Of a stretch of 64,000 bases of DNA, positions 4,472-45,972 are shown in pieces; position 1 is the first letter of the stretch, and every line of letters begins with the position of its first letter. The position numbers were made by a program, and so were the translations under genes. The notes below the pieces were generated by a model. That model did not search any database. It was given only the letters and a program-made list of their open reading frames with translations, and had not been told where the DNA came from. The DNA is taken from the sequence record OZ195934.1; one strand, given 5' to 3'.

Positions 4472-4537
4472 AGGGGTTGACGATTGTCAGCCCTTTTTGC
4501 TATATTAGCTCTATCGAAACGAACAAGAGAGCACATT
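4472..4537 (+). promoter_or_regulatory. Fused terminator hairpin / sigma70 promoter cassette
   Basis: GGGTTGAC-GATT-GTCAGCCC-TTTTT with -35 TTGACG (4477-4482) in the 5' arm; TGcTATATT at 4498-4506; conserved ATCGAAACG; ATG at 4538. Confidence 0.8.
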
Positions 4538-24943: not shown

Positions 24944-25009
24944 TTGCGCGTTGTTTCGAAAAAGCCTAATATAGCTCTATCGAAACAACGCAGCACAAGA
25001 GAGAACATT
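24944..25009 (+). promoter_or_regulatory. sigma70-type early promoter
   Basis: TTGCGC 24944-24949, 17 bp, TAATAT 24967-24972, ATCGAAAC, GAGAGAACATT-ATG 25010. Confidence 0.8.
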
Positions 25010-27827
25010 ATGAAAACACATCTACGCGACAATGCGACAACTAGTGTCGACCACATTGAACTTGATATCACAACTGAAGTTCTCGGCTGGTTTAACAATC
25101 AGTACAATCGCGCAGACGGTTGGGTTATTGTCGACCTCGATGAGTTTGAGCGCATTATGCTTGAGCACGCGAATATCGACCACTCAGACGTGTATCGCGT
25201 TATGACTGACGACCGCACGAGCTTGTGTCGCATCAATGTAGAAAGCGAATCATATGCTTTCCTCGACAATGCGGAATATATGGAAACGGGTATGCTTCGT
25301 TTCGAACGACTATCGAAGTACACTAGCTTGTACATCGATTCACACAACGCACTATTAACGCGAGGCAAATAATATGCTTAAACTAACAACTTTCAATCAA
25401 GAATTCGTCGTGCAAGTTGGCATGGCAATTCGAATTCAAAACGTACGCACTGAACAAGTCTTCACTGCGCATGTTGGTCTTATTCGCGGCACTAACGTAG
25501 CAGTGTTCGAAGAAGATGCAATCTATGTATTCAGTGCCGACGACCGTTTAGACGACACTGAAATGTTTCAACTTGCTGACAAAGCAACTCTATCACATCA
25601 CTAAGAGGTAATATTATGTTTGGATTTATTGGCGACGCTATCGACTCTGCTGTAGACTCTGTATCAAATACTGTAGATGACTTTGTACACGATCCAGTTG
25701 GTACGACTGTAGACATGGCTCTATCGCCTGTTTACAACGCTGCTGACGTTCTAGATGGGCTGACAGAAGGCGAGATTCGCGTAATGGCTGCTGCTAAACT
25801 AGGCGCTGACGTTGCGGCTGGGATGGCAATGTCTGAAATCATCGAAGCACTTTCTGAATAGGTGACTGTATGTTGAAAGCTACGACGAAATTTCAAATCT
25901 TTATGTCATTCTTGATGATGTGGCTGTCATGGGATTGGTTTAGTATCAATCACGCGACCGATGCGATACCATACTTCATTGCAATCATTCCGGGTGTTAT
26001 GTGTGGCATGGCGATTCAATCAAGCATCAACGACTTGGGAGATTATTTGAATGATAAGCGTAGTAATTAGACTACTGGCAAGTGTTGTGATGTGCTTAGT
26101 TGCACCACTTGCATATGCAAACGCAGGTAGTATCGGTGTGATATCGGCAACACTTGCAATCACTGCGATCAACTCATCGCTATTTTTAGACTTTAAACGA
26201 TTAATGGACAAACAATGAAACGAGCATTTATAGAGGCAGGCATCGGTGGTATGTCACTTGTAGGCGTACATGGCGAATACCCATACGGTCACGGTAATTA
26301 CTGCACTAATACACAAGGCTACTACTTCACCAATATCTGGGCAGAGAACTTAGAACACGTGCGCGATGTGCTGAATCTATTGCCAGATGGTAAGATAGAA
26401 GTTCTACTGTTTCGCGGTGAGTCTAAAACAAACTACGTGTATGCCTACGTTATAGACGAGCGTGTGCCGAAAGAAGCGTTACATGCTCCTTACTTCTGTG
26501 GTATTAAGACAAACACAGATATTATTCGACATCACTACGACATCCCTGACGACAAATGTCTGTGCGATTTTGACGATCTCAAGTTACTCAGTTTCCGTTC
26601 GTCAAACAACAAAGGTCGTATCAAAGCGTCATGCTACGAGTGCGATACTGTCTTCGAATTTCAGCGCGTTAGAGCAACTGGCGTATATCGTGTGCAGAAA
26701 GCTACCGATGATGGTTGGAATCGATGGGTACTCGCGTGGTTTGACGACGGGACTTTCCGACAACTACCGGATATGGTCGAGCTGTTCCCTAGCGACATCA
26801 TCAAAGTTGACGTTGAGCGCGTGCATGAATTCGGTAGCGGTGCTGAACAAAGTGGCGCGGTTGCCGTAGATGATTTCTTGTTTAACGGAATCGTTAGCAA
26901 AGATGTGAAACAATTGTAACAAAAATCGGCGTTCCTGCGGAGCTAGTGTCTTGCAGACACTTGGCTCCTTGGCGAGGTAAAGATGAACGAGGTAAATCTT
27001 ATGGGTAAAGTTCTTGATGCACGAGGCAACGAGTATGATCTTGATGCTTTATATCGCATAACACCCGCGCACATAAGCAGCGTATATCGTGAACCATCAT
27101 ACATTGGCAAAGTTACTGCTGATTTTGACTTCGCGTACAACGATGTTGAAGAAATCGAAGATGCGAAGATCGGTACGATTAAGCGTCAGCCACCACAGCT
27201 TGAGTTCGGTCACGTGTATTCATTTGTTCTTCTAGCAGATGGTAATCGCGCAGTTGGTATTTGGCATGGCTCTGAAGTTGGCTTTGCATGTGGTCCCGTT
27301 TACGTAACCAAGTCTGAAATCGACTGTTACACAATCAAGAGAATGAATAATGCACTTTAGTATTGAACAACTCGACCAGATCGAGAACAACTATCGCGTA
27401 GTTGATACAATCAATGTAGGTGAGCGTAAAGGTTCACCGCAAGCGAAGTACGTAATCGAAATCACTAAGGGCGATTACTGGCATGGCGGCATGAATGAAA
27501 TGCAGTACGTCGATGATGAACTCGTCGGTCACTGGATTCTTGAATACGCAACTGACCCGTATTGGGATGGCGTCGATAAATGCGTCAAGACTGACGAATG
27601 GACTCGCGCAGTTGAAGTGACTGTAACTACATGGGTGGCGGCAGATGAAGTGTGAATGTTGCGGTGATCCTAACGGCTCAAGTGATGGCGTAGGCATGAT
27701 TCTGTGTGATGATTGCTATTACAATGGCTATCGCGGTGATTCTCGTGCGACTACTGGTCAGACTGAGAAAGGTCAAACGGTATTCGTACCTGCAAGCCTG
27801 TTAGAAAAAGTGAAAGATGTATTGAAA

Positions 27828-27893
27828 AAGGGTTGACTTCGGTCAACCCTTTGCTGTATTCTACGTATACGAAATCAAAACGGAGAACGAAAC
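27828..27893 (+). promoter_or_regulatory. Fused terminator/promoter cassette
   Basis: GGGTTGAC-TTCG-GTCAACCC-TTT with TTGACT 27833-27838 in the stem; TATTCT 27857-27862. Confidence 0.75.
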
Positions 27894-33890: not shown

Positions 33891-34216
33891 TTGAACTTCA
33901 TATCTTAATTGCACTGTTCGCAGTGCATTTCATTGCTGATTTCTTCGTACAGACAGAACATCAAGCACTGAACAAAAGCAAAAACATTTGGCCACTTACT
34001 CGTCACTGCATTACATACGGATTGTGTTTCTTACCATTCGGTGCAGTGTTCGCAATCTTAACTGGTATGCTGCATATCGTTGTTGATTATGCGACATCGC
34101 GAATGACAAGTAAGCTTTGGGCAAAAGGCGAGACTCGTAAATTCTTCCAAGTTATTGGGCTAGATCAGTTCTTACACGCGATTAGTTTAGTAACAGTTTA
34201 CGTTATTTTGCAATAA
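33887..34216 (+). CDS. DUF3307-family membrane protein
   Basis: HFIADFFVQ...H...LHIVVDY...DQFLH His/Asp pattern. Confidence 0.8.
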   Translation: MIELHILIALFAVHFIADFFVQTEHQALNKSKNIWPLTRHCITYGLCFLPFGAVFAILTGMLHIVVDYATSRMTSKLWAKGETRKFFQVIGLDQFLHAISLVTVYVILQ

Positions 34217-34223
34217 TCGAGAT

Positions 34224-34295
34224 AAAGTGGTTGCGCATTGCAGCCACTTTCAGTATTATAGCTCTACTTCCAGAGAACTTAAACAAGAGAACATT
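34224..34295 (+). promoter_or_regulatory. Hairpin-embedded sigma70 promoter
   Basis: AAAGTGGTTGC-GCATT-GCAGCCACTTT; TTGCGC 34231-34236, 17 bp, TATTAT 34254-34259; ATG at 34296. Confidence 0.75.
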
Positions 34296-35050
34296 ATGAA
34301 AATCAACTTACGCAAACTTCTAATGTGGTGGGACGAGCAAGAACAACTAGCTGACGTGTTCACTGAGTTCGTTCTAGAATACGCAATGAAAGCAGGTAGC
34401 GACAACTTCGTTTCTGACTATGCACGTGTTCTACGCGATTCTGGCAAGTTTACAGTGCCGAATCTAGCTGACTTAGAAAGTCTATTGCGTCATGCTGGTT
34501 TGAATACAGAGTTCGACGGTCGTCAAACTCGCGTTAATCTATAGAGGTAATCATGTTCAAGAAATTCTGGTACAAATTATTCGGTGATCCTGAATGGAAA
34601 GTTGCGGGCTATACAAAGCAACATAGTTTTTCAGTGACTTGTTCATGGGGTGATACAGGCAAGGTTACGTGCCGTGCAGTTGTTCTAGTCAACAAACACG
34701 ACGAACGTACCATCAAAATTGTGTATGATGAATATGACTACACTCAGTCATTAAGTGACACACATCATCGTCTCATTGACAAGATTATTTCTGTTAAAAA
34801 GCAAAATCTGATTCACAGTAGTATGTCAACGAAGAAGCTCAACTCGTATGACGACTTTGACTTGTGTCTACACCATAACGCATTCTTTGATTGGGAATCA
34901 TTCAACGACGATTTCATATACGGTGAAGTCAATCTAGATGGCACATTAATCGAAAAGAGCGAAGCGGAATAATGGTAGAGGCGGAAAAATTCCGTCTCAT
35001 CTTAGTGGTATTAGTGAATTTAGTAGTATTAGAGATATTAGGAGTATTAT

Positions 35051-35740
35051 ATGAATCGTAAACTTGCACTTGTAGCTGCATTTGCAGCATTTGCAATGAC
35101 TGGCTGTAATGATGTTACACTCGCAACAACAACAAACGATAAAATTGTTGCAGTGCGTGATGTTTTAAATCACGAAGAATCTGTTATGATTAATCGCTGG
35201 CTTCAATTAGCAAGTGGCGATTCGTACTTGTACGATGATATGTGGGCTGCGCTTGCAACTCGTAACAAGTATGGCGGTACGTCAAATAAACGCGCAGACT
35301 CAGAACTACCATTCTGTGATGTGATCGAGGGTGTCGTAAAGAGTGAAAAACGTATACGTGATTCATTCAAAGGCACGTTGTCTAATCAGTGGAAGACGAA
35401 ATACGGTTTGACTCTTGCTCAACAGTGTGATTACACGCCACCACTGACGAAGAAAGAAAAAATGGCGTTGCTTGAAGAGCGAGAAATCGATCTTAAACTT
35501 GAAGACGCATCACCGAAGCCAACAACGATGAACGAAGTCGTTGATTCGGTTAACACGTTGCTTGACCCGCATGAGTATGACTATCTGATTGAGTCTGCGC
35601 GTGAGTGTAAACGTGCTAAGGTGAAGTTGTTGAGTCTGACTAACGTAGGTCAACCATTGACGATACAAGACGGTGACGACGCTCGTAAGCTAATCATCGA
35701 ATGTAAAATGCACAAACTAGAAGTGGAATTGAACAAATGA
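35051..35740 (+). CDS. Predicted lipoprotein, paralog of 51674-52393
   Basis: Signal peptide with lipobox MTGC; PFCDVI, QW..KYG.TL..QC, C.RAK.KL, C.MH.LEVELNK. Confidence 0.8.
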   Translation: MNRKLALVAAFAAFAMTGCNDVTLATTTNDKIVAVRDVLNHEESVMINRWLQLASGDSYLYDDMWAALATRNKYGGTSNKRADSELPFCDVIEGVVKSEKRIRDSFKGTLSNQWKTKYGLTLAQQCDYTPPLTKKEKMALLEEREIDLKLEDASPKPTTMNEVVDSVNTLLDPHEYDYLIESARECKRAKVKLLSLTNVGQPLTIQDGDDARKLIIECKMHKLEVELNK

Positions 35741-36519
35741 AAAAACTAACATGTGATGTTATGCTGAGACGCGGCGTTGATCTACACGATGGTGATACAA
35801 TCGCGAACGTTGACGATGATGATTGGTCGGTAGCGTTCTGGGGTCAATGTTGCCAGACGATTATATCTGGTCAGAACGTATGCCCTGCTTGGGTTATTCG
35901 AAACTTCGCTTGGCGCGATTACTCGATGAACAAGCCGACTGAGGGTAGCAACTATCCGGTTGAATACAGAGTCGCAGGTGGTGGTATTGGTTTCACGACC
36001 TCCAATCATCTTGCTCAAACTAAACTAATTAAAGAATGGAGACCTTGCATGAAATCGTTGCAAGTCGATACCGTAACACCGAAGAGCGTTGAAGAACTTC
36101 TTGAAGAACTTGGGGAAATGCCGTCAACGACTGCTGAACAAGTTGTCGATGAATCACTCCCTGCTAACGGAACGCAGTCGCTGCACGAAGAAAACGGCAT
36201 GACAGATGCAGAACTAGACGAAGCACTCGACGTAATCACTGAGTTCGCGACTGAACCTGACGACCTTCCGCGCCTTGATATGTCTAAAGTTGCTACTGTG
36301 ATTTACATGGGCAAGCCTCACGCGATTATCGGTGATGACCCGTTTGACTTTGAATACATGTACCTCATCGGTGATAATCAAATCGCGGTGCGTGTTCCCA
36401 AGACTCAAGTCGCGACACAAACCGAGTTCGACGAAGCAGCGCGATTCGAGCTTGAACACAAACAGATGTGGACAACTCAAGACTACGTTCACTTGATTCG
36501 TTCTGTTCGCGAAGTGTAA
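35737..36519 (+). CDS. Hypothetical protein with acidic central region
   Basis: 260-aa ORF overlapping the upstream stop codon. Confidence 0.75.
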   Translation: MKKLTCDVMLRRGVDLHDGDTIANVDDDDWSVAFWGQCCQTIISGQNVCPAWVIRNFAWRDYSMNKPTEGSNYPVEYRVAGGGIGFTTSNHLAQTKLIKEWRPCMKSLQVDTVTPKSVEELLEELGEMPSTTAEQVVDESLPANGTQSLHEENGMTDAELDEALDVITEFATEPDDLPRLDMSKVATVIYMGKPHAIIGDDPFDFEYMYLIGDNQIAVRVPKTQVATQTEFDEAARFELEHKQMWTTQDYVHLIRSVREV

Positions 36520-36525
36520 TGTTTA

Positions 36526-36566
36526 AGCCCTCCTAAATATGTCATATAATCATATGCAGGAGGGCT
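36526..36566 (+). promoter_or_regulatory. Late-promoter candidate inside an SD-sequestering hairpin
   Basis: AGCCCTCCT (36526-36534) / AGGAGGGCT (36558-36566) perfect inverted repeat covering the SD; CTAAATA at 36533-36539. Confidence 0.75.
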
Positions 36567-36570
36567 ACGC

Positions 36571-37104
36571 ATGCCAATGCAAACATCGGGAGCTATTTCC
36601 CTTAACGATATCAAAACATACTTTGGCGGTGATACGTCTGTCCCGATGAACTCATATTATCGAGGTGGCGCGTACATCCCCGACATTACAGAAAATGCAG
36701 CAATACCTACGTCTGGACAAATCAGTATAAACAACTTCTACGGCGCTATGCGTCTAACTGCGGTTGATACTACTCGCAACACGAGTCGAAGCACTGATAG
36801 CACACGAACAACGTCGTATACGACTAGCTGGACTAGTTCATGGACGACTACATGGCAAACGAAGCGCGGTTCGTCGAGATCTACAGGTTATACAACTACA
36901 TGGTCAACAAGTACAGGCTGTGGTAAGGGTGTATGTGGATCTCAGAACACGAGTCGAAGCACATCAAGATCGACCGGTTACACAACATATTGGTACACGA
37001 GTCGAACTACAAGTCGAGGGACGAATCGCGGTACCGCTCGAAGCACAGCATATTCGTATACTACTACATGGTCGACAACATTCTCGACTCAAACACCGGA
37101 ATAA
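36571..37104 (+). CDS. Thr/Ser/Arg/Trp-rich period-4 repeat protein; predicted long beta-hairpin fibre/adhesin with an N-terminal attachment domain
   Basis: N-terminal domain with duplicated TSG.IS..(D/N) motifs, then TSRS/TSWT period-4 repeats mirrored around GCGKGVCG. Confidence 0.8.
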   Translation: MPMQTSGAISLNDIKTYFGGDTSVPMNSYYRGGAYIPDITENAAIPTSGQISINNFYGAMRLTAVDTTRNTSRSTDSTRTTSYTTSWTSSWTTTWQTKRGSSRSTGYTTTWSTSTGCGKGVCGSQNTSRSTSRSTGYTTYWYTSRTTSRGTNRGTARSTAYSYTTTWSTTFSTQTPE

Positions 37105-37106
37105 TC

Positions 37107-37316
37107 ATGACAGAAAGTGAGAAAAACGAGCTACAACGGCTCAATAATGAGGTGAATCGTTTGAATGAAGTTTGTGCTAACTTACAAGAAAGTCAAACGA
37201 TCATCCTTGAAACTATAATTGACCACATCGCGTCGCTAGATGCAGACCGCGATACATTATTGCGTAGTTACGACGATGCGATTCAACGTATCATCGATAA
37301 GCACAGTGGTGAATAA
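37107..37316 (+). CDS. Small coiled-coil protein (possible assembly partner)
   Basis: ELQRLNNEVNRLNEVCANLQE heptad pattern; 2 nt after the fibre gene stop codon. Confidence 0.7.
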   Translation: MTESEKNELQRLNNEVNRLNEVCANLQESQTIILETIIDHIASLDADRDTLLRSYDDAIQRIIDKHSGE

Positions 37317-38165
37317 ATGTTACATGAAATTCGTGAAGAGACTCAGGGGTTTAATAATGCGTGTCGTATAGGCACGCTTGTTCTCAGTGATCATAAGCCG
37401 TACGATTCGTGCTTCGAAGCACTTGAAATATTACGCTCAAATGGATATCCGTGTAACTTCGATATCAATCATGACAATGGCGGCGGGTTTAGTACGAATG
37501 AATGGGTGTCTCAGTTAAGAGCATTTTCCGTTCGCTATATGAAATCCTCTGTTCATACAAAAGCACTTGTTCAGTCATTCTATGACAATGAGCATGATCA
37601 TGTAATCGAGCTGCCGAAACGCGGGGACAAATACAAGCTAAAATCACTTGCTCCTTGTTTCAAGCAATACAATCGAATCGTGTTCATTGGTGGTACTAAT
37701 CTGATTCATTCACATATGGATTTAGACAAGATTGATGTCATTCTTGACATGGATTCTAGTGTCGTGATAAAGCCACACCCACTTACAAATGTACAAGACA
37801 TGAAAATGTTGACCGAGCGTTATGGTAAAGGTCGCGTTCTGTACAACAAATTGAATGGGATCGAATTGCTGCAACAGTGTGAGCGTGCATGGATCCCCGT
37901 CTCGTCTGAAATGTGGTTCACTTGTGCCTTTTTAGGTATCCCGTACGACACGATCACGAAGTCTGACTACGAGATTGGTGGCACGTACTACGCGATGTTA
38001 GAAGCAATGAAGATCATTCAACGTGACACTAAGTTGCCGATGAACGTCATCGCGTCGCGAATCATCACATCACCAACGTCTGGTATATACACGTCGATGT
38101 ATGCATTCAAACAAAACTATCCCAACTTCATTGCGAATGTTCAATCACATGGTGGGCGCGTATGA
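37317..38165 (+). CDS. GT-B glycosyltransferase-like protein (capsule biosynthesis KpsC/KpsS-like)
   Basis: VVIKPHP motif followed by LLQQCE...SS...FLGIP, typical of the C-terminal Rossmann domain. Confidence 0.55.
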   Translation: MLHEIREETQGFNNACRIGTLVLSDHKPYDSCFEALEILRSNGYPCNFDINHDNGGGFSTNEWVSQLRAFSVRYMKSSVHTKALVQSFYDNEHDHVIELPKRGDKYKLKSLAPCFKQYNRIVFIGGTNLIHSHMDLDKIDVILDMDSSVVIKPHPLTNVQDMKMLTERYGKGRVLYNKLNGIELLQQCERAWIPVSSEMWFTCAFLGIPYDTITKSDYEIGGTYYAMLEAMKIIQRDTKLPMNVIASRIITSPTSGIYTSMYAFKQNYPNFIANVQSHGGRV

Positions 38166-38806
38166 TCAATTTAGACATCCATACTTTAATTTCAAGTGAG
38201 GCGCAAGTCGATTCACTTATAATGTTCAGCACGTCGTTTCGATTGCATCACGCAGATAATGCAGGGGTCATTAAATGCGTCGTTCTCCCGCCAATCGATA
38301 TAGAATCATTACCGTCAATTGATGGCGTGGATTATGTTCGAACATTCACATCCAAATACGTATTCTTGTCAGTCGATAACTTTTTCATCAATAAGATCTA
38401 TGCTGTGTATAGCGCACATCGAGACCGAAACTCAATTCGTAGCTATTTCAATGATGATGAATCGACAGACTTCATGATCGTTAATGATAACGATGGCGAA
38501 GATGTTGAGAATATTCATATGAATATCAATTTCAGTTTTGACAGTCATGGGGATCGAAATGATTACTATAAACGACTGGTTCAAATGAAAGACGTGGTAA
38601 GCATCAACACTAAGAAATTCAAGCTGACCGACCGAACGCAAATAAACAGTTTGTACACTTTACTGTTCCCATGGGAGACTTACTTCGACTCGATGCGACG
38701 AGCAACTGGTCTAAGTGAAGAGTTTATCAGTGATGTGATGTTCAATTGTCAACGATTTTCACATGGCATTGTATATCGCCATAGTGGTTTATTAAATGTG
38801 AGTTAA
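38162..38806 (+). CDS. Hypothetical protein in the modification cluster
   Basis: 214 aa, translationally coupled; no motif recognised. Confidence 0.7.
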   Translation: MINLDIHTLISSEAQVDSLIMFSTSFRLHHADNAGVIKCVVLPPIDIESLPSIDGVDYVRTFTSKYVFLSVDNFFINKIYAVYSAHRDRNSIRSYFNDDESTDFMIVNDNDGEDVENIHMNINFSFDSHGDRNDYYKRLVQMKDVVSINTKKFKLTDRTQINSLYTLLFPWETYFDSMRRATGLSEEFISDVMFNCQRFSHGIVYRHSGLLNVS

Positions 38807-38808
38807 TT

Positions 38809-39495
38809 ATGAAAGAAGTTATATTGATATCAGGTCTAGACAGCATCGTTTTGTATGAAATGCTAAAGTCGGCTAGTCCGAATCTCATTCCAGTTTATTT
38901 CAAATGGGGATTTGACATTGATGACGCGGAAATCAAGATGCTGCCGTCCGGTACTAAAATTCACGAAGTCCCTGAATGGATGCAATTTGACACCGATGGC
39001 AAGCTTGGTGGGGATGAGTGTATCAACTTAGATGGGCGTGATACGATCATGATGAACTTGGTTATGCACATCTACAAGCCGTATGTTATCTACAAAGGCA
39101 CGATTGCAAACGACACGTCATATGTGGAATCTCATGTTGAATTTACTGAGAAAATAAGTAGAACGTGGCGTCTTATCAACAGACACGAGTGTGACATTAA
39201 ACATCCGTTTATAAAGAAGACTAAGCGTGATATTATCGCGTATGCTAACAAGCTCGGAATTGACGCACGTGATTATCAATATTGCTACAATGCTGTGGGT
39301 AATTGTGGCGTATGTAATAAGTGTCGAATGACTCGATTATTGAGTATGTATTCCGACAATCCTGACGTTGAATTTTTACGCAGTTATCTTGGTGAGTGTC
39401 AAAAATCAGCGACGAAGAAAATCGGCGACTACTTGGTGTCGGGTGATGTCGTCGAAGAACTAACAACTTTTTTAAGGAAGTATAATGAAAATTGA
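38809..39495 (+). CDS. QueC-like PP-loop ATP pyrophosphatase
   Basis: N-terminal ILISGLDS (degenerate SGGxDS), PF...TK..I, and C-terminal Zn site YC......CGVCNKC. Confidence 0.75.
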   Translation: MKEVILISGLDSIVLYEMLKSASPNLIPVYFKWGFDIDDAEIKMLPSGTKIHEVPEWMQFDTDGKLGGDECINLDGRDTIMMNLVMHIYKPYVIYKGTIANDTSYVESHVEFTEKISRTWRLINRHECDIKHPFIKKTKRDIIAYANKLGIDARDYQYCYNAVGNCGVCNKCRMTRLLSMYSDNPDVEFLRSYLGECQKSATKKIGDYLVSGDVVEELTTFLRKYNEN

Positions 39496-40156
39496 ACATC
39501 ATTTGATTGATGGACGTGATTTGATTGTTATTGATGATGCGTTCTCAAGCGCAGATCTTAGCACAATATCACACGTCATTCATGGGATCACTGACGCTCA
39601 TTGGGCTGAGGGGCACGACGAAAACTTGCTTCGATATTCAGGCATTCATGCCATGAACGTAGATGCAGGAACGGACAGTGCAGATAGCGTAATTCGCGGT
39701 GACTGTGTGTTTTTAGAAAACTTACCAGAACACGAATTTATATGTGGGTTGGTTGACAGTGCGATCATCAATGCGTTCTCTACTGTGTCTATCGTAAGTG
39801 ACGATGACAAGGCGAAGATACTAGAAGACAAGAACGAGTTTTTCTGCCGCGTGTTGCGATACATGCCTGGGTATTACGATGACTGTGCAGATGGCGACAA
39901 CTTCTTGCACACGGACATTCGACTTGGGGTGATGTTCACTCCCGTTATCAATCCAGAAGAGCCGCAAAGCACTCTTTATTACGAAGATGATAAATTCGAA
40001 ACGCCTGTCCTGACACTCGATCACAAGCCCGGTCGTTTAGTTGTGTTTGACGGTCGAATTGTTCATGCTCCTAGTAAGTGTTTTAAAGTACCGCGCTATG
40101 CGATGTCGCTACACAACGACAATGATATGCGCCATTATTTGTCGAAGTTTAGATAG
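39485..40156 (+). CDS. 2OG-Fe(II) oxygenase (prolyl-hydroxylase-like)
   Basis: LIVIDDAF start, HTD...KPGRLVVFDGRIVH...R facial triad and 2OG-binding Arg. Confidence 0.85.
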   Translation: MKIEHHLIDGRDLIVIDDAFSSADLSTISHVIHGITDAHWAEGHDENLLRYSGIHAMNVDAGTDSADSVIRGDCVFLENLPEHEFICGLVDSAIINAFSTVSIVSDDDKAKILEDKNEFFCRVLRYMPGYYDDCADGDNFLHTDIRLGVMFTPVINPEEPQSTLYYEDDKFETPVLTLDHKPGRLVVFDGRIVHAPSKCFKVPRYAMSLHNDNDMRHYLSKFR

Positions 40157-40162
40157 GTTATT

Positions 40163-41056
40163 ATGAGTTCAATCGAAAGAATAGCTGATAAAATGATTCA
40201 CATTTATGATGATGGAATCAAGCGTGCGCAGTGGTACTTTGGTAGTCGAACTCATGACTTTTATCTGTACGGTGTCGGTGAACTACTTGACGTAGTTCGC
40301 CAGTACCCATTCATTGACATGCAGACTAAGCCAGTGGGTACGCTTGTTAAACGTGGCGAGCCTGCGATTGTTGTTACTATCAACTCAAACGAATTGTTGC
40401 AATATGGCAATATGATCGAGACGTTGATTTACAATCGTATTTGGTATGCGTCAACCGTTGGTACAATTCTGCATAACATGCGCGATCATTTGCATTCGAA
40501 TGGATTTGATGTTTATCGTGCATTTCCTCAGATGGGTCGTGCAAGTGTCAATGAACATCAAACGAAAGTTGCTAGTGACATTTTCAGTCGTGTATTTTAC
40601 AAGCTCAATGATTCGCTACGTTCAGTTGCGACTCATAATGAAATACTCATGACTAGTGAGACGTTTTGTATTGAAAACTATCATAGTGTGATGGCTGATA
40701 CGTACGACATACGCGAGTTTTGTAAACTTGCAAACTCACTGAACTATTCAGGTGAGATTATGGTTGATTCTAAGCCAATCATTGATAACATTGAATACGT
40801 GCTATCAGAAACGCCTAATACGGTATGCCAAGTTGAATCAGTGACACGAGAGGAATGGTACGACATTGTTACTCATTTCAGTGGGAATGAACGAGTGCTA
40901 TTCGGAATTGGTAGTTGTTGTTTTACGAATGTGAATAGAGACACGCTTGGGTTCGTGTACAAGACGTGCGCGATACATCGAGGCGACGAGTGGATTGCTG
41001 TTAGTAAGCAGACTAAAAACAAAGAAACATTCAGTGGTTATGTAGAGGAATTGTGA
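40163..41056 (+). CDS. Hypothetical alpha/beta protein in the modification cluster
   Basis: 297 aa, coupled to the radical SAM gene; family not recognised. Confidence 0.7.
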   Translation: MSSIERIADKMIHIYDDGIKRAQWYFGSRTHDFYLYGVGELLDVVRQYPFIDMQTKPVGTLVKRGEPAIVVTINSNELLQYGNMIETLIYNRIWYASTVGTILHNMRDHLHSNGFDVYRAFPQMGRASVNEHQTKVASDIFSRVFYKLNDSLRSVATHNEILMTSETFCIENYHSVMADTYDIREFCKLANSLNYSGEIMVDSKPIIDNIEYVLSETPNTVCQVESVTREEWYDIVTHFSGNERVLFGIGSCCFTNVNRDTLGFVYKTCAIHRGDEWIAVSKQTKNKETFSGYVEEL

Positions 41057-42060
41057 TGAAGAAATACTGCATGGCGCCATTTGCGTCACCTGCAATCACG
41101 CCAGACGGATTTAAGCTGTGCTCATATCCCGGTCAGAAAGTGTACGACGATTTGAGCTTCTGGAATAGTGAAGAGATACAAGAACTGCGCAGGATCATTC
41201 GTGACGGCGGAACGCCCGAGTCGTGTGCTGCGTGTATGGCGTCACGTGATGGGATGTTAATTACGCACAACGTGCATGAATTACGCGATGATTACGTTCC
41301 GATCAATTTTAAGAACTTGTTCATTGCGAGAAGCAATAAGTGTGATTATGCATGTGAAATGTGCTCGTCATCAATATCGCATTCGTACGACAGGATGTTC
41401 AATGACGGTAAGATCGGGATTGTTGAGAACAATTTTGACTTGACTCCGTATCTGCACGAGACTAGACACGCTGCTATTTCGGGTGGAAACCCTGTTTTAG
41501 ATAAAAAACTCATTGAAATAATCGACCAGCTTGATGTTGATCGTCTGGAATCTATGTTCTTCACTAGTAACGGGTCGGTATTCCCAGATGCGTTTTTAGA
41601 TTCAATCAAGCGATTGGAGCGTACTGACATCAGCTTGATATTTTCAATTGACGGCCCACAAGAATACAACGAAAGCGTTCGTATCGGCTGTAAGCAATCT
41701 CGTTTTTATAGCACAGTTAAGAAAGTAATGGAGCGTGTTCGTGACAATTCGAACATTTATACATGCTTCGAATTCACTGCTACTAACACGTCGATTACTA
41801 AAATGGCAGAAATGTATGATGAAATAATCATGACTCTGACTAATGAAGAGCTGTCACGCATCAAATTTGTGTTCAATACATGTTCATTTCCGCATTCGAT
41901 GTCATGTTTCAACTTGAGCAGTGAACAGTATGCTACCATCGAGGTGCAAATTGCATACTTTGAGTCGATTATGCGAACATCGCCACAGCATTTAACTGAA
42001 GCGATTCTGAAGAGACTCCGTGAGTACAAAGAACGCTACGACTCGCAGCGAATTTTATAA
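41053..42060 (+). CDS. Radical SAM enzyme with N-terminal twitch/SPASM-like Fe-S domain
   Basis: CMAPF...LC...CAAC, then SNKCDYACEMC (CxxxCxxC), SGGNP, TSNGS, FSIDG. Confidence 0.9.
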   Translation: MMKKYCMAPFASPAITPDGFKLCSYPGQKVYDDLSFWNSEEIQELRRIIRDGGTPESCAACMASRDGMLITHNVHELRDDYVPINFKNLFIARSNKCDYACEMCSSSISHSYDRMFNDGKIGIVENNFDLTPYLHETRHAAISGGNPVLDKKLIEIIDQLDVDRLESMFFTSNGSVFPDAFLDSIKRLERTDISLIFSIDGPQEYNESVRIGCKQSRFYSTVKKVMERVRDNSNIYTCFEFTATNTSITKMAEMYDEIIMTLTNEELSRIKFVFNTCSFPHSMSCFNLSSEQYATIEVQIAYFESIMRTSPQHLTEAILKRLREYKERYDSQRIL

Positions 42061-43149
42061 TATAATTGACTGATCGATGAAAGACAGTAACACAGGGGAA
42101 GACTTTTCTAAGTCTTCCCTTTTTGCTTTCTGCAACGTCTCTTTACAAAATGCGAGCCAATTCACGTGTGAGTATTTCGAGAATGATTGAACAGACTTCA
42201 ACTCATTCAACACGCGTCTGTTTGCAGTGCAATCGTCTGCGTTTTGCATTACCGAAATTGAGTGTTTCATGAAGTCTGGGTGCGCGTTTGACATAGCCAT
42301 ATTCGTCGGCATTGATATGAACCCAATTCCAATCTCAATGTCAGGGAACGCACTCGTCAGTTCAGGGAATCGCTCGATGTTATACAGTGTAATCGTAGCA
42401 AGAAGAGACACATCGTACATGCTACGATAAGTCTTCGCCTTGCTAATGAACTCACAAAGCCGATTGTAGTTGATGAATCGTCGCTGCACGTTGTTCACAT
42501 CTTCAACACCATCGATTGATATAACCAATCTAACGTGCTTGCCTGACATGTGCAGGTTGAACATATGAGTGAAGAAATCGCTACCATCCCGCATCGTAGA
42601 TGAATTACCATTTGTTACGATGGTCACTTCGTTTACATCGGCATCAATCAGAGATTCTACAAGTTCAGTCCCGCGCTTCATATCCTGCAAATTACCACCA
42701 AGTATTCGTATCGTATCTGCACCAGTCACATCATTGATCGATTGTATACACTCATCGATATTGTCGATGTTTTGAATCTGTTCTGGGTTGTATTGTTTCG
42801 AATACGTTCGAGAAAACTCGTCGCCACACATTATACACGCGCCTGAACACTCATTTGACGGGTACAATATCAAATTGCGCACATCGCTGACTGATACATT
42901 GGTTGAAATTACCGCGTTGTCTTGTTGGAATCGATGTTGTAGATCAGATGAAATACAATACTTGCACGAATCGGGTAGGTCATCGAATCGATGTTCGATC
43001 ATTGCTTCACGCACGTCAGTGATTGTTTTGTTGTTTAATGCGCTTGATGCGTCAGTGTCATTGTAGCGTATGTATGACATACAGCATGAGCTATATGATT
43101 CAGCGGCAATCCCGAAGTCAGTGAATGGGGCAGTGCAAAGAGGTTTCAT
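42055..43149 (-). CDS. Radical SAM enzyme with N-terminal twitch/SPASM-like Fe-S domain
   Basis: CTAPF...SCC...CKYC, SNECSGACIMC, LGGN, VTNG, ISIDG. Confidence 0.9.
   Translation of the reverse strand: MKPLCTAPFTDFGIAAESYSSCCMSYIRYNDTDASSALNNKTITDVREAMIEHRFDDLPDSCKYCISSDLQHRFQQDNAVISTNVSVSDVRNLILYPSNECSGACIMCGDEFSRTYSKQYNPEQIQNIDNIDECIQSINDVTGADTIRILGGNLQDMKRGTELVESLIDADVNEVTIVTNGNSSTMRDGSDFFTHMFNLHMSGKHVRLVISIDGVEDVNNVQRRFINYNRLCEFISKAKTYRSMYDVSLLATITLYNIERFPELTSAFPDIEIGIGFISMPTNMAMSNAHPDFMKHSISVMQNADDCTANRRVLNELKSVQSFSKYSHVNWLAFCKETLQKAKREDLEKSSPVLLSFIDQSIIL
42096..42124 (+). terminator. Rho-independent terminator for the + strand operon, lying within the convergent radical SAM gene
   Basis: GGGAAGACTT-TTCT-AAGTCTTCCC-TTTTT, perfect 10-bp stem. 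Confidence 0.8.
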
Positions 43150-43185
43150 AGTTTATTCTCATAATATTCGATGTATAATTAATTC

Positions 43186-44126: not shown

Positions 44127-45457
44127 GTAGAATCACATTAGCAATTCCGATGGCTGGGATGGGTAGTCGAATGGGTGCGATATCAGAAATCGTACCGAAA
44201 GGTTTGATCAACTATCACAATCACACATTCTTGTATCACATTTATCGTTATTATGAAGACGCGTTCGACGAGTGTGTAGTTACCGTGAACTCGAAATTCA
44301 GACCGATGCTTGAGCAGTACGCAGAGAACTTCAATCTGACGCTGACTATAATCAATGATGATACGTATGACGGTAACTCGAACATTCTGCATCACTGTAA
44401 AGGCGATGTGATCTTGAACTGGTGCGATGTTGTCCCGGTTGACGTTGACGTTCGCGACTTGAAATCAGGCGTCACGGTGTTCACTAAAGACGGTACGGGT
44501 CGTTTCGTCTACGATAACGGGGTAACTGAAGTTTCAACTGACTCTGGTGATTTCTGTGGGATATACGCGATACGCGACTGTGAATATGACATCGTTAATG
44601 GTGATTTCGTAGATGTCATGATCGCGAATAACTTTGATGTTGATTTGCGCGAGTGTGATGTCGTTGATCTCGGAAGCTTTGATAAGCTTTCTTTGACGCA
44701 AGACACGCTACCGACTGCGAGATATTTCAATGAAATCACATACCACGACGGGGTGATTCGAAAGCGTGCAGTTGGCGACGAGCTTAGTCGATTCAAAATA
44801 TCTAGAGAGATTGAGGTATTAAAGGAAGGGCGCGTTGGTTACGTTGAATTGATTGATCATGATGATGATTCATATACCATGCCAGTCTTGTACGGAACGA
44901 TGCCGACTCGGCTAACACCGCCTATGATCAACAAGGGTGATGATGTCAGCGAAGATGATATTCGCGTCGAAATATCTGAGCGAGTTCTATCTAGAATCGA
45001 AAGCATCACTGAATATACGCACATTGATATTGATGAGCTGCGCGTTAAGTTGCATGAACTTGAATCGTATGTGATAGAAAATACTCATGCTTTCTATGAC
45101 ATACACGGTGATATGATTTGCGACAACGCGTTCGATACTGACAATGGGGTTGTGTTTATTGACCCGCGTGGTTACTTCGGTAATGGAACACGCGGGCCGA
45201 TTGAATATGACACGAGCAAGTTTCTATACAGTGTTAACGGTTACTTTGATTTCAATTACAACGTCATGTACGACGGTGATTTCGAGAAGTACGACAATCA
45301 CAGTGAAATGTCATTGCTTGAAGAAGCATGGGTCGCGACTCACTGGCTTGCATTGGCAGGATTCTTCAAGAACAACCCATCGAAAGCAATTGGTGCATAT
45401 CACATTGGTATGAACAAGTTGTGTCGTTTCATCGCGACTCTAAGCGCGTCTCGTTGA
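44123..45457 (+). CDS. Nucleotidyltransferase fused to an APH/choline-kinase-like domain
   Basis: IPMAGMGSRM...PKGL N-terminal NTase signature, WCDV, and C-terminal HGD...N...FIDPRGYFG kinase motifs. Confidence 0.85.
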   Translation: MSRITLAIPMAGMGSRMGAISEIVPKGLINYHNHTFLYHIYRYYEDAFDECVVTVNSKFRPMLEQYAENFNLTLTIINDDTYDGNSNILHHCKGDVILNWCDVVPVDVDVRDLKSGVTVFTKDGTGRFVYDNGVTEVSTDSGDFCGIYAIRDCEYDIVNGDFVDVMIANNFDVDLRECDVVDLGSFDKLSLTQDTLPTARYFNEITYHDGVIRKRAVGDELSRFKISREIEVLKEGRVGYVELIDHDDDSYTMPVLYGTMPTRLTPPMINKGDDVSEDDIRVEISERVLSRIESITEYTHIDIDELRVKLHELESYVIENTHAFYDIHGDMICDNAFDTDNGVVFIDPRGYFGNGTRGPIEYDTSKFLYSVNGYFDFNYNVMYDGDFEKYDNHSEMSLLEEAWVATHWLALAGFFKNNPSKAIGAYHIGMNKLCRFIATLSASR

Positions 45458-45972
45458 TTAACGTCGCGCTCAACTAGTATGCACTTCACACCTGCGCAGT
45501 TGTCTTCAACGTCGCGTATATTATCGATACGGTCATCAATGAAGTATTCAACGTTGTCTATTTCATTGATGTACTTTGACTTTGATTCATGAAACTCGAT
45601 GCTGATCAGCTCGTCAATTAGAGTCGGGAACAACGCATTTAAGTTGAATTGTCTATTGCACCATGCAGTGCGACTCCATCCGAACTTGGTAAGCGCGATT
45701 ATCTTGTGCGTCTTTGCTAATTCGGTAAGGCATTCTAAAGCATCTTCATACGCAGGCATGTATCTCGCGCTTGCGTGTTCAGTATAGGCGCCCATCAGCT
45801 TACCAATTTCACTATTCGATGCATTGACGAACATTTCACTTGCTCTAATGTCAGTCGGTATCAGTGACAAGTCGTTGAGCTTGTGTGCCATCCCGATATC
45901 ATTCATGAAAAACGGAAGATTCGATTTCCAATTCAAAAGTACCCCATCTACGTCAATTACTATCGTTTTCAT
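45400..45972 (-). CDS. HAD-superfamily phosphatase / nucleotidase
   Basis: IDVDGVL (DxD), ALT, SK, FIDD motifs I-IV. Confidence 0.9.
   Translation of the reverse strand: MKTIVIDVDGVLLNWKSNLPFFMNDIGMAHKLNDLSLIPTDIRASEMFVNASNSEIGKLMGAYTEHASARYMPAYEDALECLTELAKTHKIIALTKFGWSRTAWCNRQFNLNALFPTLIDELISIEFHESKSKYINEIDNVEYFIDDRIDNIRDVEDNCAGVKCILVERDVNQRDALRVAMKRHNLFIPM

Follow-up and report, generated by a model that had tools for sequence, protein, structure and literature searches.

The DNA analysed here, referred to as the window, is a stretch of 64,000 nt from sequence record OZ195934.1. It belongs to Vibrio phage 6E35.1a/D483, a KVP40-like phage of 253 kb from the Straboviridae (Schizotequatrovirus type). 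A 2.5-kb test stretch of the window was 100% identical to Vibrio phages D483, K491, 6E35-1b, 6E35.1a and others; the host of these 253-kb phages is Vibrio crassostreae. The element under study is a 51-nt spacer between a gene for 260 aa and a gene for 177 aa, within a long plus-strand series of accessory and metabolic genes (PnuC, NadR-like, QueC-like, NAPRTase, radical SAM). The flanking genes and the features of the spacer, all on the plus strand, are the following.

35737 to 36519: upstream gene, 260 aa, phrog_13539, the last of a tightly packed co-oriented series
36521 to 36526: GTTTAA, candidate -35 element, sigma-70/T4-early-like (GTTTAA-N18-TATAAT), by pattern match
36526 to 36534: outer 5' arm AGCCCTCCT, the anti-Shine-Dalgarno strand, by sequence and fold
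36532 to 36539: CCTAAATA, putative gp55-type late promoter box with the core CTAAATA at 36533 to 36539, by motif, position weight matrix (PWM) and orthologue position
36537 to 36541: inner 5' stem ATATG, by sequence and fold
36542 to 36550: 9-nt loop TCATATAAT, holding the predicted late start and the -10-like TATAAT
36545 to 36550: TATAAT, perfect -10-like element in the loop, by pattern match and missed in the preliminary description
36551 to 36555: inner 3' stem CATAT, by sequence and fold
36556 to 36558: predicted start of the candidate sigma-70 transcript, 6 to 8 nt after TATAAT
36558 to 36566: outer 3' arm AGGAGGGCT, forming a perfect 9 bp with the 5' arm and holding AGGAGG
36558 to 36563: Shine-Dalgarno sequence AGGAGG, 7 nt 5' of the ATG at 36571
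36571 to 37104: regulated gene, 177 aa (MW824377 p0320/QZI87587; QZI87587.1), with a conserved N-terminus and a variable tail
37107 to 42060: seven more co-oriented genes without spacers, including a QueC-like gene, a NAPRTase gene and a radical-SAM gene

The preliminary description of this DNA had reported a perfect 9-bp inverted repeat that buries the AGGAGG, an inner ATATG/CATAT stem and an overlap of CTAAATA with the 5' arm. Each of these was found in place, and the predicted RNA fold was the structure described there. The outer and inner stems are parted by a 2x2 internal loop, and CTAAATA takes in the final 2 nt of the outer 5' arm together with the initial 3 nt of the inner 5' stem. The minimum free energy of the RNA from 36515 to 36585 was -25.6 kcal/mol, compared with -13.2 +/- 2.4 kcal/mol for 200 dinucleotide shuffles (z = -5.2), none of which was as stable. 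For the isolated hairpin, the value was -20.6 kcal/mol at 37 C and -25.1 kcal/mol at 25 C. Genome-wide comparisons were made on a composite genome consisting of MW824377 1-193100 and the reverse-complemented window, in which 431 genes were predicted. The cost of opening the ribosome-binding site (RBS), 23.3 kcal/mol, was the highest of all these genes (mean 6.0, SD 3.15), and the 177-aa gene was the only one with a full AGGAGG Shine-Dalgarno sequence. The 14-mer made up of arm and box occurs once in the window, its own complement aside. No match with E <= 1 was obtained when 36200 to 36900 was scanned with the Rfam 15 covariance models. When a ribosome terminates at 36519, it may open the first 2 to 5 bp of the outer stem and leave the Shine-Dalgarno-proximal pairs in place.

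The genome contains genes for a gp55 homologue (phrog_234, E = 2e-57) and for a sliding clamp. Genome-wide, N(A/C)TAAATA was strongly enriched 17 to 49 nt 5' of start codons. A site was counted as being in promoter position when it was non-coding and 10 to 70 nt before a start codon on the same strand; 8.6% of the genome is non-coding. In the composite genome, 8 of 16 copies of TCTAAATA, 7 of 18 copies of TATAAATA and both copies of CCTAAATA were in promoter position, as were 0 of 21 copies of NGTAAATA. Upstream of the genes for the major capsid protein, prohead core, sheath, wac, tail lysozyme (annotated p0217) and vertex, the box is TATAAATA. Either TCTAAATA or ACTAAATA is found upstream of the genes for the tail tube, the proximal long-tail-fibre protein, a gp48-like tube cap and head completion and of another tail-fibre gene. 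CTAAATA is also the late consensus of the schizo-T-even phage Aeh1 (PMC1524935; PMC2988020).

In the spacer, the last A of the CCTAAATA box lies 31 nt 5' of the ATG. At -13 and -12, the box reads CC instead of the TA of T4, and one other CCTAAATA is present in the genome. With a leave-one-out PWM, this site scored 14.1 bits and ranked 12th of 27, ahead of the promoters for capsid, sheath, tube and wac; scores this high were reached at 27 of 506,654 genome positions, a chance of about 3e-5 per position. According to the virion proteomics of 6E35.1a (PMC12028318, Table S8), the products of several motif-bearing genes are found in virions, with values of 21.5 for p0071, 27.5 for p0184, 47.5 for p0203, 38.5 for p0114, 177.5 for Alt and 11 for p0276. 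The gene for p0071, a virion protein by these data (PMC12028318), is the sole other gene with CCTAAATA and is oriented against the early genes. The only motif-bearing hypothetical protein that was not detected in 6E35.1a virions is p0309 (PMC12028318). The enrichment, the use at tail tube and fibre genes, the virion proteomics of other motif-bearing genes, the PWM score and the position in orthologues lend credibility to CTAAATA as a gp55-type late promoter of this phage.

Late boxes were observed in several other settings. Within the window, the minus-strand genes at 45400-45972 (p0309) and 42055-43149 (radical SAM) have TCTAAATA (46003-45996) and GCTAAATA (43193-43186) upstream. This fits p0042, p0071 and alt, in that genes running against the early direction carry late boxes. 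Late boxes also lie in or beside terminator-like hairpins (MW824377 128917, 148915 and 123820; L012). Upstream of p0203, such a hairpin with a late box reads GGTCTTC-TAAATA-AGAAGACC; upstream of p0219, GAGCGGCTAAATAGTCGCTC is followed by a T-run; and upstream of the tail tube gene, the sequence is GAGGGGC...GCCCCTCTAAATA. A weaker version of the hairpin design was seen at wac (fibritin), at MW824377 133689-133760 (L012 33689-33760, minus strand). Its arms are CCTTTGTATTG and CAATACAAGGG, with TATAAATA in the loop and the Shine-Dalgarno sequence AAGGGA in the 3' arm, and its opening cost is 12.4 kcal/mol.

In T4, the late box lies at -13 to -6 relative to the start (PMC1524935). By this rule, late transcription would start 6 nt beyond the box, at 36544 to 36546, which places the start in the loop and past both 5' strands. 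The geometry of the motif thus bears out the earlier proposal that a transcript starting in the hairpin lacks the 5' arm, since a start at about 36545 would exclude both 5' strands. In read-through RNA, modelled with 51 to 250 nt of upstream context, the probability that the Shine-Dalgarno sequence is unpaired was 0.005, and opening the region from it to the AUG cost 21 to 23 kcal/mol. In late RNA starting at 36544 to 36546, the corresponding values at 37 C were 0.65 and 8.3 kcal/mol. This contrast held at 25 and 15 C. Among 27 genes with late motifs, the difference between read-through and late RNA was 14.3 kcal/mol here, and the next largest was 6.1 kcal/mol. The fold predictions also agree with the claim that early read-through mRNA folds, because the predicted hairpin would sequester the Shine-Dalgarno sequence in any transcript arriving from upstream.

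The arrangement of the genes would allow read-through from upstream. The stop codon of the 260-aa gene (TAA, 36517-36519) is located 7 nt 5' of the hairpin, and the packed series to which this gene belongs begins at a promoter of the promoter-early stem-loop (PeSL) type in the spacer at 34216-34296. A terminator scan gave no candidate site from 34300 to 36520. Transcription from the PeSL promoter through these co-oriented, packed genes may enter the 177-aa gene. From 36571 to 42060, eight genes follow end to end without room for another promoter. Since the seven downstream genes have no intergenic spacer, transcription to them must cross the 177-aa gene. Two genes 5' of the hairpin lies p0322 (35051-35740, 229 aa, phrog_8733), whose product was recorded at low abundance (3) in virions (PMC12028318, Table S8).

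PeSL-type cassettes are present in the window at 4480-4520, 24948-24991, 27827-27852 and 34230-34290. They have an AAAGGG...CCCTTT stem that holds TTGAC or TTGCG, followed by a TAWWAT -10 element and then by a leader that they share, AGCTCTATCGAAAC...GAGAGAACATTATG. Their organisation agrees with the consensus published for nt-1 and KVP40, in which an A3-4G3-loop-C3T3-4 terminator stem has TTGYVH inside and the -10 element downstream (TTGYVH-N17-TAWWAT; PMC4122927). The hairpin in the 51-nt spacer was considered as such a cassette and rejected: its AGCCCTCCT/AGGAGGGCT stem has no T-run, the -35-like TTTAAG/GTTTAA is outside the stem, and only TATAAT fits. It was also rejected as an intrinsic terminator, as the stem is followed by ACGCATGCC with no U-tract and the hairpin was not listed by the terminator scan.

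The boundary of a gene module lies immediately 5' of the hairpin. K566/K567 and two metagenomic relatives depart from the window at 36510-36521. The breakpoints are before the hairpin and not inside it, indicating that the hairpin is part of the downstream module. K566/K567 share the upstream gene, but the block at 36571-41056 is replaced in them by a PeSL and one gene for 475 aa, whose product has a signal-peptide-like N-terminus. The metagenomic relatives (X7 and X8) depart at 36510 into AATAAATAAAAGTTTAAC... A search for sequencing runs listed DNA runs and no RNA run. Four of the DNA runs yielded these two relatives, a further one (X5) identical to the window and another (X6) whose contig ends near 36396. 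No hairpin variants, and hence no covariation, were found in the four runs. The hairpin sequence was identical in 16 of 16 close relatives, so that covariation within the clade is absent.

More distant sequences were compared through the conserved N-terminal 66 aa of the 177-aa protein, which have homologues in F86 (71% identity), KVP40 and relatives (50%), VS2/QD01 (47%) and D479 (44%). The corresponding box is TCTAAATA in F86 and CATAAATA in KVP40, VS2 and QD01. The distance from the last A of the box to the ATG is 31 nt in the window and F86 and 31 to 32 nt in KVP40, VS2 and QD01. In the five-sequence alignment, TAAATA is invariant and the remainder of the spacer has diverged, apart from an equally invariant ATAT at the position of TATAAT. 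In the predicted folds of F86, KVP40, VS2 and QD01, the Shine-Dalgarno sequence is paired with a strand that lies upstream of the box or overlaps it and that would be absent from late RNA. F86 is predicted to form a helix of 8 bp, the 5' strand of which overlaps the box. In the fold predicted for the KVP40 clade, a helix of 9 to 10 bp closes a multiloop that encloses the box and a separate hairpin. The helices of the window and of F86 occupy the same position and differ by C:G to G:C and C:G to T:A, which are compensatory double changes, and by C:G to T:G. These pairs were read from the folds, as the Shine-Dalgarno cores of the window and F86 were offset by one column in the MAFFT alignment.

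In the orthologues, the helices are modest. Their opening costs of 7.6 to 9.2 kcal/mol are in the normal range for this genome, and their differences between read-through and late RNA, 5.0 to 5.6 kcal/mol, fall roughly within the top tenth of motif-bearing genes. The comparison covers three lineages and predicted folds. The D479 orthologue has neither the box nor the occlusion. In viral contigs, no related loci were found for the 177-aa or the upstream 260-aa protein, and the pattern TAAATA-N24-38-ATGCCAATGCA gave 119 non-specific matches, none of which encodes the N-terminal motif. The hairpin structure and its exceptional rank, the validity of the promoter motif, the geometry and the conservation of this logic among orthologues were all established in silico.

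The product of the regulated gene consists of the conserved 66-aa N-terminal module and a hypervariable tail rich in Thr, Ser, Arg, Trp and Tyr, the "zipper". The ORF is intact and in frame, with its composition kept, in D482, F86 and KVP40. Between the window and the D482 clade, all 57 substitutions fall within 36777-37094, the Thr/Ser/Arg/Trp-rich tail (about 18% divergence), and none is in the first 206 nt of the gene or in the spacer. Many phage proteins carry the N-terminal module together with a fused Gp38 adhesin (P0005, PF05268, 48 bits), Gly_rich_2 or PKD domain. On one contig, the gene with the module is located two genes after that for a GpJ-like tail tip protein. Structure neighbours in an atlas include GP38 and Gp38_N clusters, which serve as a lead only. 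Neither the 177-aa protein nor its N-terminal piece had a Pfam match, and PHROGs gave only a family of unknown function for the protein. The fusions of the module and the hypervariable tail make a tail-fibre-associated role in host interaction plausible, and a role in the virion is likewise plausible from the sequence.

The OZ-series annotation (D483; VP6E351A, PMC12028318) has three spurious calls in place of 36571-37104 (36539-36649; 36896-36985 on the minus strand; 36933-37316), and the correct ORF is given in MW824377 (p0320). In the 6E35.1a proteome, VP6E351A_0311 (36 aa), 0312 and 0313 occupy the place of the 177-aa ORF. Because this ORF is missing from the mass-spectrometry proteome, the published virion proteomics is blind to its product.

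We consider that the 51-nt spacer is a T4-type translational gate with a promoter inside a hairpin, with a probability of about 0.65, and that the 177-aa gene is probably translated solely from locally started transcripts, as the fold models suggest. Read-through RNA from the upstream early-type operon would carry both arms and fold (about -21 kcal/mol), leaving the gene untranslated. RNA polymerase would go on into the seven spacer-less metabolic genes, as the U-less hairpin would not terminate it. After the onset of replication, gp55-RNA polymerase would use the CCTAAATA box overlapping the 5' arm to start at about 36545. The late RNA, without both 5' strands, would expose the strongest Shine-Dalgarno sequence of the genome, and the protein made late would probably be a tail-fibre-associated, adhesin-like virion component. 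The start sites, the timing, the repression in vivo and the role of the protein are what we infer. The co-oriented virion genes p0114 and p0276, which are also in early regions, have a U-tract terminator and a late box instead. A terminator at the present site would starve the downstream genes, which may be why a U-less stem that occludes the Shine-Dalgarno sequence silences translation alone.

The preliminary conclusion that the protein is strictly late is not secured, because the sigma-70-type match nested in the hairpin could yield early transcripts without the 5' arm. Counting both strands, the genome has 16 matches to the pattern GTTTAN-N17/18-TATAAT. About 11 of these sites, that in the spacer among them, are non-coding and just 5' of genes, which include nrdH, a dNMP kinase gene and queC; about 1.4 would be expected from the non-coding fraction of 8.6%. 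Judged by these positions, the pattern is evidently a real promoter class of this phage, and it resembles the T4 early -35 element GTTTAC (PMC1524935). In the window, this second promoter class, (t)tGTTTAN-N17/18-TATAAT, was seen at 36521-36550 and on the minus strand near 43151-43179. The genes behind it belong to DNA metabolism, and looser copies stand before the primase, polymerase and topoisomerase genes; the phage group is MotA-less and AsiA-bearing. A sigma-70 match on the opposite strand (TTGGCA-17-TATGAT, 36577-36549, 10/12) was set aside as a consensus match only and probably due to chance; fewer such matches were found in this region than in shuffles.

The chance that the nested promoter is active at this locus falls slightly short of even. 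If it fires, the gene would be locally promoted only rather than late only. Under the corresponding alternative, a working sigma-70-type promoter, alone or with the late box, would express the 177-aa gene and the seven downstream metabolic genes before replication, and the hairpin would be a translational insulator that only uncouples the gene from read-through. The surplus of the pattern in promoter positions speaks for this, as do the leaders of 18 to 19 nt after the -10 element that occur also at nrdH and primase and the lack of any other promoter spacer in the downstream block. RNA from 36557 would moreover leave the Shine-Dalgarno sequence accessible (probability unpaired 0.42; opening cost 6.0 kcal/mol). 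However, TATAAT may be an A/T-rich initiation region of the TATA(A/T) type that is common after late boxes in this phage, and the corresponding ATAT is the part kept throughout the orthologue alignment. A GTTTA-type -35 element was not found at the KVP40, VS2 and QD01 orthologues, F86 has just a weak TTGTTG-N17-TATATT, and a generic sigma-70 scan did not call the site. The costliest Shine-Dalgarno-occluding hairpin of the genome would also be nearly without purpose if the gene were translated early. On balance, we regard expression that is not late-only as somewhat unlikely. A promoter-nested translational insulator, in which sigma-70- and gp55-type promoters share one hairpin at the head of the eight-gene block, is a tentative and rather improbable extension. 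With it, upstream polymerase would pass to the metabolic genes, and the adhesin-like zipper protein would be made from locally started RNA only. The same logic in three schizo-T4 lineages with non-homologous helices would then imply strong selection against untimely synthesis, possibly because the 177-aa protein is aggregation-prone or toxic.

The hairpin might instead serve the upstream operon or genome plasticity, as a 3'-end stabiliser, a U-less terminator or a PeSL-like cassette, its overlap with the Shine-Dalgarno sequence being incidental. Its position 7 nt after a stop codon, the divergence of K566/K567 and the two metagenomic relatives next to it, and the frequency of PeSL cassettes in the window, which are known also in nt-1/KVP40 (PMC4122927), are in line with such a function. 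We nevertheless hold it to be very unlikely. The stem is followed by ACGCAUGCC without the U-tract that the terminators of this phage have, the PeSL consensus is absent (the stem is not A3-4G3...C3T3-4, and the loop has no TTGYVH -35 element), and the breakpoints precede the hairpin. The 3' arm, moreover, is exactly the Shine-Dalgarno sequence, and the unrelated helices of the orthologues pair theirs too. A chance inverted repeat with chance motif matches and no regulatory role is the least probable explanation, to which we give hardly any weight. The evidence is in silico, and in a clade where the element is invariant, selection on pairing is invisible; but the z score of -5.2, the first rank among 431 genes, the unique AGGAGG, the late-box score expected at about 3e-5 and the position of the box in three lineages all speak against chance.

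If the gate operates as proposed, the timing device of T4 e, soc and 49 extends to the large KVP40-like vibriophages, for which no transcript maps were found in the literature searched. The strongest Shine-Dalgarno sequence of the genome combined with its strongest occluding stem makes a clean, testable case, and the results support CTAAATA as a late-promoter variant that functions alongside TATAAATA within a single genome. The analysis also flags a hypervariable, probably tail-fibre-associated gene that is mis-split in the OZ-series annotation. The phage group has a broad host range and is studied for host-range evolution, and this gene is invisible to its published virion proteomics.

The statement in the preliminary description that T4 e, soc and 49 use this arrangement is confirmed by a review, which adds I-TevI (PMC3014915). 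For T4 gene e (lysozyme), an initiation hairpin with internal late promoters has been described (McPheeters et al.; reviewed in PMC3014915). As there, the Shine-Dalgarno sequence and AUG are predicted to be paired in long early transcripts, the gp55-type late promoter would lie in the DNA encoding the 5' strand so that late RNA without this strand would be translated, and the gene lies co-directionally in what is probably an early transcription unit. The present locus differs in belonging to the KVP40-like subgroup with a Vibrio host, in its unrelated gene, in its CCTAAATA rather than TATAAATA box, in its longer, GC-richer stem with a full AGGAGG and in the possible sigma-70 promoter nested in the hairpin; it is known from sequence and predicted folds.

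A predicted delay of translation through an occluded RBS is also shared with T4 soc, 49 and I-TevI and with mobE of the Aeromonas phage Aeh1, for which an RBS-sequestering hairpin is reported (Gibb & Edgell 2007, 2009, as cited in PMC3014915). T4 soc similarly encodes a late virion accessory protein in an early region, and Aeh1 is a schizo-T-even phage whose late consensus, CTAAATA, has the same core as the box here. There is no sequence homology of genes or helices with soc, 49, I-TevI or mobE, and the products of mobE and I-TevI are homing endonucleases, not virion proteins. With PeSL cassettes (PMC2839356, PMC4122927), the spacer shares an intergenic stem-loop with a sigma-70-like promoter and a position at a boundary at which relatives differ in their gene modules. 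In contrast to them, its -35-like element is outside the stem, its -10-like element is in the loop and its 3' arm is the Shine-Dalgarno sequence. Of the traits that define the e/soc/49/I-TevI class, sequestration of the Shine-Dalgarno sequence is predicted by the fold models, and the placement of the late promoter is supported by motif and geometry. The locus is thus a well-supported new example of a trick known from T4 and not a new principle.
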